Source of the DNA: Oikopleura dioica | Lineage: Eukaryota > Animalia > Chordata | Assembly: GCA_907165135.1 (NCBI GenBank) | Contig: OU015567.1 | Coordinates: 2,356,001 to 2,420,000 of the forward strand | Reading direction: 5' to 3' | Length of the DNA stretch: 64,000 nt | Shown here: positions 19,077-22,914 of the stretch, piece after piece | Layout: every line of letters starts with the position of its first letter | How positions within the stretch are numbered: position 1 is the first letter of the stretch | Made by a program: the position numbers and the translations under genes | Notes under the pieces: model-generated | Told to the model about the DNA's origin: nothing | What the model saw: the letters and a program-made list of their open reading frames with translations, nothing else | The model's database searches: none

Positions 19077-20546
19077 TCATGAAAGAAAGTACCAAGCTAC
19101 AAAGCCAAGATTTGCAAAAATTCCAATGAGTCCACCGAAAATAAGAAAATAGTCGATTCCTATCCAGCAGTCAAATTTGAAGAGTTGAGGTTGAAGAACT
19201 GTTGCAACGTGAGAACTTAACAAAAAAGTCACTGACATATTCATATTGCTAGAATGATCAACCTGTCATCGATTTCTTCGATAGAATATTCCAAGCAGCC
19301 GTCGACATAACTTTTTCTATCATCGAGTTGATATTTCGTAGCTGCAACTCTCAAGCAGCTTATGACAAGTGGTAGAACAGTGATGAAAAAGTACTGTCCC
19401 AGCATCTTCATTTCATCCTTTCCAAATTTCACTTTACTTTCTCGCTGCTCTTTGATCAAATCCTTGTATCGAAGCGTCAATCTGATGAAGCTGAAAAGCG
19501 CGAGGGAAAAAGTAACGATTGAGCTCATCAAGATCGCTGAATTTTTCGTCGTCTCAAAGCCGTCGGGGTAGAAATAGTCAGTTCCACTGAATTTGTCGAT
19601 GAAATAGTACTGTAAAATTGTCTCTGGACCATCGTCGAGCAAATATGCAATAGAAGAAACCAGCATTTTCTGCTGAATATCTTCGTAAAAGCCTTCTCTA
19701 GTATTCAACCAGATCAGCATCGTTGCAGCTGTCAAAGGAAATGCTATGATCGCGAAGATTTCATAGACAACCATTGCTGCTATCGCGGGTTTTTGAAGAT
19801 GAATATATGTCGAATCGAGTGGAAAGTCGATGAGAAGAGCATTGATGTAGGCAAAGTCGGAGATGTAGTCGATGATGAGAGAGATGAGGGGAAAGAGAAG
19901 CGATCCATAAACTCGGATTCCCATAAAAATGTACGAAAAACGAGTGCTTGCGGCTGTTTCTTCTTCCCGCTAGATTTTTTTGTGTCAAACTGGAGGAGGA
20001 TAAGTACCTGGCTTTTGATCTTCAAAACTTTCTCTTTCCCTCTTTTCATAAAGACCAAATAATAAATAACAAACAGTAGCATCAATAAGCACGCTGCCAT
20101 CATTATCCATAGAAATATCAAGAATCCATTCACGAACCCTGGAAGCTCGGATGGTTTACATGTTGTCGAGTTTCTTATATCTTTAGGAAGAGCAAGATCG
20201 TTTGTACCATTATGACATGCTTGATGATTTTTGTTACCGGAAAATTTAGAAAAAAATTACCTAAAAGTCCGATTGATGTGTCAATTGGATAATTTCCTTC
20301 AAAATATTTCGTCATTTTGTCCGATTATCTCTACTGATAAAGTGGTTTTAAAAGAAACGCAGCTTATTTGTATTTATCTCTTTTTCTCAAACAAAGTCGC
20401 CACTCATGATCGTAAAATTTCATTGTTTCTCTTTTGCCCCGGAAAAGATATTCAAGAGCATCTTGAACAAGTTCTTTTCGATGCCTTAAACTTCCTTTAA
20501 TTTTGAAACTGAACAATTTTTGCCCGAAGGCGATGCGCTTCGGCAA
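19077..20546 (-). CDS. Uncharacterised multi-pass membrane protein (XK-related-like motif), multi-exon
   Basis: Several hydrophobic helices; IIDYISDFAY and LLDDGPETILQYYF motifs in ORF 19241-19924; final exon 19077-19212 inferred; 5' end uncertain. Confidence 0.62.
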
Positions 20547-20603: not shown

Positions 20604-21882
20604 ATGAATAGAATCATAAGAATCAGCATTCTTGTTCCTTTATTCATTATTTTATTCATCATTTGGCGACGAAAACACGACGAAATAAGAGACCAATATA
20701 AAGAAGAAATTGATGTTAAATTTCAATATGAAGAGAATGATTTGATTAAAGACGAGTTCAGGGTTTTCAATCCTGGAATTAAATATATCAACGGATCAGG
20801 TAGAAAGCCTTTGAAATTTTGATAAAGACTCTATTTCTCAGTTCTCACCGTTTTACGAGTCAACTGGTTGTTCAAAGATTCGAACCCAAATTTTAAAAAC
20901 GGCCGTTCCGAATGGCGCAAGAACAACTCCCTCATTCTAGCGCAGCTAGACAGAAATGGGCTTGTCACGAAACTTGTCCCCTTCCAGCCCTTCGAGGATT
21001 CCTACGACTGCGAAATGGATCCTGATTGGATTGATGGAGGCCACGGTCTTCAGGATCCAAGAATTATTTCTCAGAAAAATACGCTGAAAATACTCTTCAA
21101 TGCTCGAAATCAGAACAAAGAACCTTTTCAACCGTGCTTTGGCGATATCAAACGGGGGCTTTGGATGGCAGAACTATCCAAAAACCTTGAAATCATGAAT
21201 GCAGCTAGAAAATTAAGCGAAATCAGCTTGGGAAAATGGGATATTGAAAGAAATTGGACGCCAATTGATGATGAAAACGCAGAGGAAGAGATTTTTATTT
21301 ACAGTTTTTATCCAGAACTGATTGTTGTGAACACAACAGCCTCAGAGGTTGACTTCAAAATATTTCCAACCGTTGGGAAATTCGAAGACACTTTCAGAAG
21401 CGTCGCCGAAATCGCAAAAATCGACGCTGAGGAAGCGAATAAGAAGATTTCTCTACATGGTTCTTCTCCTTTGATTAGGTTAGCCGATTGTATGAGGCAA
21501 AAGTAGGAATAAAATCTTTTTAAGATTGAACAACGAAGAATTTCTGGGAATCTTACACTGTCACTTTGCACCAGAAAATGACGATTCGCGTGTTTATATC
21601 AATTATTTCTTCAAAATGAGGATTTCCACCGACTACGAATCCTTCCAAATAACCAGCTCGGGCTTCAAACCCCTCCCGCTCGTATACGAAATCGATGAAA
21701 AATTTGAAAAATTAAATCAAGAGAAAAAGCAGTACAGAGACAACTATCTGTCGAAGAATAAGATTGTTTTTGTGTCCGATATGACAAGGGTTGATGATGA
21801 GCTTTGGATCACGTATGGAGCTGGAGATGCAGAATCAAGATTATTTATACTGCCTGTTCAAAATTTACAAAAATATATTTGA
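20604..21882 (+). CDS. Type II membrane protein with putative five-bladed beta-propeller glycosyltransferase/glycosidase domain
   Basis: N-terminal TM anchor; introns at about 20800-20841 and 21479-21525 give a continuous frame; motifs FNPGI, QDPRII, ERNWTP, HGSSPLI, GILH, YGAGD. Confidence 0.65.
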
Positions 21883-22385: not shown

Positions 22386-22914
22386 ATGCTGTTTTTAAAG
22401 AGACTTTTTCCAAAGAAAAGGAAAATCACTCCCGATGAAATGGAGAGAAGAAATGAGGCCAAAAACAGGCTAGAGAACGCAAGAGTCTTTCAGAGAAATG
22501 TCGATGAGACAACAATTGCTTCGAGATTCGCCATCGATTCAAACATACGAAAGAAGCACAATGATTCGGATATCAATTATCAGGAAAGATTTAAAATCAA
22601 TAACTTTTGCAAAATGCTTCTATTAAATCAGTTGAAAATCTATTTCGAAGACAACGCCAACGACTCTCGATTTCAAAAACTTCATCCTCTCCTACTCTGA
22701 AACTCTTCAGCATCAATCGCAAAACATGAAAGTCATCGGCAAACTTCTCAAAGAAGACCATTTCTACGAATCTGGAGATCGAAAACGCGCTGAACAAAAG
22801 AATATCGTCCAAAATATGTTTGATGGATTTCGATACACAAACCCGCTGCTCAAAAATCTCGGAACACTAAAAATTCCCATTTCTGAAGGAAACAATTTTT
22901 TGCAAACTGAATAA
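22386..22914 (+). CDS. Uncharacterised small protein, two exons
   Basis: ORFs 22386-22700 and 22726-22914 join in frame through a putative GA-AG intron at about 22584-22650. Confidence 0.45.

Follow-up and report, generated by a model that had tools for sequence, protein, structure and literature searches.

The locus described here, at positions 20604-21882 (+ strand) of a 64,000-nucleotide stretch of the Oikopleura dioica genome (contig OU015567.1; the whole stretch that was analysed is referred to as the window), raises two questions: what the encoded protein does, and how a chordate came to carry it. An earlier sequence-only reading had seen in it a Golgi-type anchored β-propeller glycosyltransferase or glycosidase, interrupted by introns and perhaps acquired horizontally. 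The follow-up analysis confirmed a real and intact three-exon gene, whose product defines, in a chordate, a membrane-anchored branch of the GH130-like superfamily that is new and uncharacterised. The favoured reading of its function, held with moderate confidence (a probability of roughly 0.5) and drawing on predicted structures and analogy with characterised enzymes, is that of a membrane-anchored inverting β-glycosyl transferase of the secretory pathway, similar to GH130 and GT108 proteins.

Three collinear open frames lie on the + strand (20604-20822, 20868-21506 and 21526-21882), and each of the two GT..AG introns between them introduces stop codons in the incoming frame or a frame shift. 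Joining the exons gives a coding sequence of 1191 nucleotides (nt) and a protein of 396 residues, with V66 and R278 as the split codons at the two junctions and a TGA stop at 21880-21882. Introns had been claimed from the sequence, and the two that were found measure 42 and 46 nt. The public Okinawa model Oidioi.mRNA.OKI2018_I69.chr2.g4514 (P0032, 516 residues) is identical to the three exon translations over residues 1-65, 67-277 and 279-366, and its residues 66 and 278 agree with both split codons, so that both junctions have been annotated independently. For the searches described below the exons were used separately, residues 1-366 of P0032 stood for the joined protein, and the last 30 residues were covered through exon 3. 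The gene is laid out as follows.

Exon 1, 20604..20799, + strand: residues 1-65 and base 1 of codon 66, with the start codon, signal anchor, stem and first propeller strand.
Hydrophobic signal anchor (about I4-W21), 20613..20666, + strand: R3/R6 before and RRKH after, as read from the sequence.
Codon of N56 in FNPG, exon 1, 20769-20771, + strand: first propeller strand.
Intron 1 (42 nt), 20800..20841, + strand: GTAGAA...TCTCAG, with in-frame stop codons inside.
Exon 2, 20842..21478, + strand: residues 66-278, propeller blades I to IV.
Invariant block DCEMDPDWIDGGHG (D121-G134), 21006..21047, + strand: family-specific invariant columns directly before the catalytic motif.
QDPR (Q136-R139), 21051..21062, + strand: D137 is the putative proton donor (compare UhgbMP D104 and BfMGP D131).
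ERNW (E201-W204), 21246..21257, + strand: R202 is the putative counterpart of UhgbMP R150 and BT3780 K199, in the +1 subsite.
Intron 2 (46 nt, phase 2), 21479..21524, + strand: GTTAGC...TTTAAG.
Exon 3, 21525..21882, + strand: residues 278-396 and TGA, blades IV and V.
H289/H291, 21556-21564, + strand: in exon 3.
YGAGD (Y375-D379), 21814-21828, + strand: in exon 3, paired by hhalign with the GH130 YYGxAD(T) motif.

The motif series on which the sequence-only reading was built was recovered in full: FNPGI (F55-I59), RVN (R71-N73), LQDPRII (around D137), ERNWTPI (E201-W204), IYSFYP (Y219-P223), LHGSSPLI (H271), GILH..YINYFF (H289, H291 and Y302-F306) and ITYGAGD (Y375-D379). Judged by sequence comparison, this series is not a matter of chance, as it is invariant or nearly so across homologues that are 28-60% identical. 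The proposed N-terminal transmembrane anchor also held; a hydrophobic stretch with basic flanks coincides with a helix in the AlphaFold model (residues 3-35) and is kept in the full-length homologues, with equivalents in P0033, P0027, P0036, P0006 and P0010. The protein is thus organised as a single-pass (type II-like) membrane protein: a short tail at the N-terminus leads into an anchor of roughly 18 residues, which is followed by a disordered stem of roughly 30 and then by the catalytic domain, on the luminal or extracellular side. Together with two cysteines that are invariant in the family (C122 and C164), the anchor and stem fit a luminal enzyme, the architecture being as in Golgi transferases.

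The catalytic domain is predicted to be a five-bladed β-propeller of the GH130/GT108 superfamily. The AlphaFold2 model of the homologue P0033 (mean predicted local distance difference test score, pLDDT, 83; predicted template modelling score, pTM, 0.80) has a helix at its N-terminus, then a disordered stem and an all-β domain, and every one of its top 43 Foldseek matches in the PDB is a GH130 or Leishmania MTP structure. In VIA-align, this model matches GH130 with Z of 25.4-21.4 and a root-mean-square deviation of 3.2-4.2 over 275-293 residues, whereas GT108 reaches 18.7-19.7 and GH43/GH62/GH117 at most 18.8. The model of the window protein itself, covering residues 1-366 (pLDDT 78), gives the same order (GH130 17.3-15.2, GT108 14.3-13.8, the GH43/62 group at most 13.4), its lower scores being explained in part by the absence of the last two strands from the 1-366 reference. 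Both predicted models are therefore closest to solved GH130 structures, which supports the five-bladed propeller proposed in the sequence-only reading.

At the level of sequence the family is a very distant GH130 relative and not a Pfam-level member. PF04041 is the best or only Pfam match for 6 of the 7 homologues, all below the gathering threshold of 26 bits; P0002 comes nearest (25.9 bits, E 6e-6), the others score 14-22 bits, and the window exons have no match. The positions of these partial matches are orderly: five homologues place the GGHGxQDPR region on profile positions 90-123, and P0010 (21.9 bits) places its C-terminal YGxGD strand on positions 267-317. The other Pfam matches of the homologues at E<=1 are CagD (E 0.02) and HHH_2 (E 0.005). 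When the family was compared by hhalign with an alignment of nine GH130 genes fetched from three Bacteroidales genomes, the two were collinear over 279 columns (E 0.002, probability 13%; reversed control, P 0.22), and sub-profiles gave weak matches (E 0.013-0.11). The family profile found no match by HMMER in three GH130-bearing Bacteroides genomes, and a whole-genome PF04041 scan of O. dioica returned nothing, canonical GH130 being absent.

The active site can be read against that of UhgbMP, in which D104 is the proton donor, R168 and H231 form the phosphate-binding pair, and R59, Y103, R150 and D304 line the +1 subsite (Li et al. 2020, PMC7660257); the numbering was verified on the 4UDG alignment. 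The putative correspondences, and the basis of each, are these.

UhgbMP N44: window N56, by motif order.
UhgbMP R59: window R71, by motif order.
UhgbMP Y103-D104: window Q136-D137, by Pfam partial hits and hhalign.
UhgbMP R150: window R202 (Lys in P0006, as in β-1,2 enzymes), by motif order and spacing.
UhgbMP R168: window Y219/S220, Arg in no member, by spacing from R202.
UhgbMP H231: window H289 or H291, on the same blade-IV strand, the register not being fixed.
UhgbMP D304: window D379, by hhalign.

The conserved acidic catalytic residue expected of such an enzyme is present, since D137 in (E/Q)DPR is invariant and is aligned with the GH130 DPR motif by both the Pfam partial matches and hhalign. 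The residue before it is Gln in the window protein, and Gln at this position is isosteric with the Glu of β-1,2/1,3 enzymes (PMC7660257). Within ERNW, the E, N and W are invariant in the family and the R nearly so. The end anchors of the mapping agree with the structural ranges, model residue 366 falling against UhgbMP 289 and F360 opposite F283. The phosphate-binding Arg appears to have been lost, with Ser in its place, and motif-level mapping places no conserved acid where the hydrolase BT3780 has its general base, E227, in a protein that carries a secretory anchor.

On the favoured reading, the enzyme would catalyse the inverting transfer of a β-linked hexose, which by analogy with GH130 and GT108 may be mannose. 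D137 would serve as the proton donor, N56, R71, R202 and D379 would form the sugar subsites, and an activated sugar donor would be used to build a glycan rather than to support phosphorolysis; secreted glycoproteins or house material are candidate acceptors only. The apparent replacement of the phosphate Arg by Ser, in a domain that would face the secretory lumen, makes a glycosyltransferase likelier than a phosphorolytic enzyme. The lean towards a transferase also comes from the nearest predicted structures, which are giant-virus propellers fused to glycan-enzyme modules, and both GH130 and GT108 include true GDP-mannose transferases (PMC12814180; PMC10913872).

Several points weigh against this reading. 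No meaningful match came from scanning the three exons against Pfam and NCBIfam, PDB sequence searches with the exons, a homologue or the family profile gave no GH130 match, and, with an hhalign probability of 13%, homology rests mainly on predicted structure. The assignments of R202, S220 and H289/H291 are inferred from motif order and spacing. Import of GDP-mannose into the Golgi is not known from animals, so the sugar or its donor may differ. The active-site residues of GT108 do not by themselves predict whether an enzyme is a transferase or a phosphorylase (PMC10913872), and bacterial GH130 proteins with signal peptides are hydrolases (PMC7660257), which favours a glycosidase.

Such a luminal or secreted inverting β-glycosidase, acting in glycan trimming like the GH130 β-1,2-mannosidases BT3780 and BACOVA_03624, is rather unlikely, yet it has several observations on its side. 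The hydrolases of GH130 are those that carry a signal peptide and have lost the Arg/His phosphate pair (PMC7660257), and here the R168 counterpart is apparently Ser220 in a protein that enters the secretory pathway; against the P0033 model, Z is 21-22 for the hydrolase structures 3qc2 and 5a7v, and the best sub-profile hhalign match is to hydrolase-type Bacteroides sequences (E 0.013). However, a hydrolase would be expected to show a second conserved carboxylate at the base position, where none can be placed; the invariant acids outside QDPR are confined to the DCE..PD..D block and E201, and the nearest predicted structures belong to glycan-synthesis fusions.

A classical GH130-type glycoside phosphorylase using inorganic phosphate would agree with the top structural matches, which are phosphorylases, and with the resemblance of R202/N203 to the GH130 (N/Q)RN motif. 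It is nevertheless very improbable, as the spacing indicates that the R168 counterpart is Arg in no family member, and known phosphorylases are cytoplasmic proteins without a signal peptide (PMC7660257), whereas the window protein has a conserved signal anchor. A catalytically dead propeller serving as a lectin or structural protein might be entertained because the central part of the active-site mapping is uncertain, but it is hardly credible when homologues of about 28-60% identity all retain the proton-donor Asp-Pro-Arg, the Asn and Arg of the first blade and the Asp of the last, and non-synonymous change lies far below saturated synonymous change.

Several known systems can be compared with the putative transferase. 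The best structural match is to GH130/PF04041 (UhgbMP 4UDG, BfMGP 4KMI, RaMP1 5AY9, Teth514_1788 9GPH, BT3780 5A7V), a family of β-mannoside phosphorylases, β-1,2-mannosidases and enzymes with dual phosphorylase/transferase activity, with which it would share the five-bladed propeller, the order of motifs (FNxA, strand-2 Arg, (Y/E/Q)DPR, RN, blade-IV His, YGxxD) and the proton-donor Asp. In contrast to these enzymes, the window protein is eukaryotic, membrane-anchored and luminal, sequence identity between the families is only 10-16%, and the counterpart of the phosphate Arg168 appears to be absent. The window family also has an invariant DCE..PDW.DGGHG insertion before QDPR, which finds no counterpart in the GH130 alignment compared, a helical insert in blade V, and an invariant sequon-like KNN(S/T)L motif.

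GT108 (Leishmania MTP1-4; 6Q4W, 6Q4X, 6Q50) offers the example of a GH130-like propeller that acts as a GDP-mannose-dependent inverting transferase in a eukaryote and was acquired horizontally. The structural match to it is weaker than that to GH130, there is no sequence match, and the MTPs are soluble, cytosolic proteins without an anchor. With the fungal GT91 (Bmt) enzymes, to which the sequence-only reading had drawn a parallel, the window protein has in common its type II Golgi topology and, by inference, β-glycosyl transfer; no glycosyltransferase model appears among the Pfam matches of the homologues at E<=1, and the GT91 fold has been described as unknown and predicted to be novel (PMC8476585).

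The closest resemblance in any structure library is to giant-virus GH130-like propellers, such as those of Pithovirus LCPAC304 (A0A481ZAU4) and Indivirus (A0A1V0SDN7). Foldseek E-values for Nucleocytoviricota proteins range from 7e-17 to 1e-14, against 3e-12 for GH130 in the PDB, and the nearest ESM Atlas clusters comprise 9 viral and 1 bacterial among the 10 matches listed. Among the closest of these structures the propeller is often part of a fusion with GT2, LicD/FKTN, fucosyltransferase, pyruvyl-transferase or HtrL modules. A 2026 preprint describes viral GH130-like propellers of the 'VSC_11007' type that were missed by sequence annotation (bioRxiv 10.64898/2026.08.04.742344), and the window family is likewise invisible to it. 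The likeness is one between predicted structures at 12-17% identity, however, and the viral proteins are multi-domain and lack the anchor-and-stem architecture. The sequence-only reading's pointer to large DNA viruses is supported in that the closest predicted structures are viral; the collections searched hold no viral, phage or bacterial sequence relative.

The family to which the gene belongs is small. An exhaustive phmmer search with exon 2 as query found 22 matches at E<=1e-3 among 1.84 billion cluster representatives, at least 3 of them repeat artefacts; 5.8 billion proteins, searched with a word-seeded profile, yielded 38, and a search seeded with P0012 added one further member, P0061. 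In both libraries O. dioica is the only named source among the matches, and the other members are marine metagenome and metatranscriptome sequences. The sequence-only reading did not count the motif series as that of a standard chordate family, and no orthologue was found among the 5.8 billion proteins in any ascidian, vertebrate or other named animal. A tiny unnamed family of this kind, with no other named animal member, may represent a lineage-specific or horizontally acquired glycan enzyme.

Two groups of environmental homologues can be distinguished. Members of group 1 are 41-52% identical to the O. dioica proteins and come from Tara Oceans metatranscriptomes and metagenomes; the genomic copy of one of them has at least 7 introns, none at the O. 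dioica positions. Group 2 (P0006, P0010, P0012, P0013, P0007 and P0061) is 28-35% identical and lies on AT-rich contigs, its genes appearing intron-less. One group 2 gene adjoins that of an SLC22-like transporter, for which the nearest clusters are eukaryotic, and another member comes from a transcript contig that bears an AATAAA signal; no recognisable leader was seen on the family transcript contig. In the tree, O. dioica is grouped with group 1 (support 95/96), and group 2 and P0006 are distant; the contigs of the distant branch are L004, L006, L142 and L143 (P0010, P0012, P0061). The genes neighbouring the environmental homologues were uninformative on their source, and literature searches on the family accession numbers and on Oikopleura with giant viruses returned nothing relevant.

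How, then, did the larvacean lineage come to have the gene? Horizontal transfer from a giant virus or bacterium, followed by intron gain, is a tentative answer. It is favoured by a strikingly patchy distribution, in which named matches are restricted to O. dioica, with no ascidian, vertebrate or other animal, by the absence of canonical GH130 from the O. dioica genome, and by the predominance of Nucleocytoviricota among the best Foldseek E-values and of viral proteins among the 10 ESM Atlas matches listed. There is also precedent, as the tunicate CesA and GH6 genes were acquired in this way, and Leishmania GT108 was acquired from bacteria (PMC10913872). Against transfer, no relative came up when 185,579 prokaryotic species genomes and 2.9 million viral contigs were scanned by motif plus tblastn, a tblastn search of phages was without match, and the family profile misses even the Bacteroides GH130 proteins. 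The GC content of the gene is similar to that of its flanks. The other members are eukaryotic (intron-rich Tara contigs and transcripts), and an old, patchily retained eukaryotic family fits these data equally well. The two origins, by transfer or from an ancient eukaryotic family that has mostly been lost, are thus about equally likely.

Whatever its source, the gene is resident and maintained. An intact single copy is retained at a syntenic locus in both Okinawa and Atlantic-type O. dioica. It is single-copy in the Okinawa-type genome (64.28 Mb in 19 contigs searched), and the Atlantic-type orthologue, which shares 98% identity with CBY31716.1, was found on a marine metagenome contig (L144). 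The upstream neighbour on this contig is syntenic, being 83% identical to the upstream gene in the window (match 19517-19945), and the downstream region has no match to the downstream side in the window. Between the window and L144 orthologues, identity is 60% in exon 2 and 69% in exon 3 and the non-synonymous divergence (dN) is 0.31 and 0.19 respectively, with synonymous sites saturated and no stop codons. Intron 1 is present at the same place in the L144 orthologue; intron 2 is absent (L144:1933-1937), exons 2 and 3 being contiguous there, and represents a gain or loss between cryptic O. dioica lineages.

Two side observations accompany these comparisons. At L144:1225-1297 the intron 1 donor reads ATCAG|GAGCTG, apparently a non-canonical GA donor, which may explain why the Norwegian model CBY31716.1 is without the FNPG..RxNW segment. 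Exon 3 has a further, weak match at G000:C2:10519517-10519744 (L003; E 0.014, 28% identity, three in-frame stops), which could be chance or a decayed fragment.

The 3' end of the gene differs from the public annotation. Model g4514 leaves exon 3 at 21789|21790 for a downstream frame near 22395 (residues match at 22401), losing the last 30 codons, VDDELWITYGAGDAESRLFILPVQNLQKYI, and the stop. The strand YGAGDAxxR forms the C-terminal end of all homologues, including the Atlantic-type O. dioica protein (CBY31716.1 = P0024; P0001), and corresponds to the last GH130 motif in the hhalign comparison, so that the true gene end is 21882 and g4514 is a fusion of two genes. The downstream gene is uncharacterised and consists of an open reading frame from an ATG at 22386 with more exons to about 22914. 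Upstream, a 227-residue open reading frame on the − strand (19241-19945) encodes a multi-pass membrane protein.

Both public O. dioica annotations have the gene model wrong, and Pfam fails to capture the family. Propellers of the GH130/GT108 type are known from bacteria, as mannoside enzymes of the cytoplasm or periplasm, and from Leishmania, as enzymes of the cytosol. With an anchored, luminal form in a chordate, the fold would reach into the secretory pathway of animals, larvaceans would possess a glycan activity that other animals lack, and there would be a testable case of gene origin by transfer versus patchy retention. In its fullest form, which is decidedly unlikely, a propeller derived from a virus or bacterium was captured by larvaceans, gained a Golgi anchor and introns, and makes a β-linked (mannose-type) glycan new to chordates, possibly for the filter house. 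If true, this would give a second transferred glycan enzyme in addition to cellulose synthase, and it would be the first transferase of the GH130-like fold with a membrane anchor and a place in the secretory pathway.
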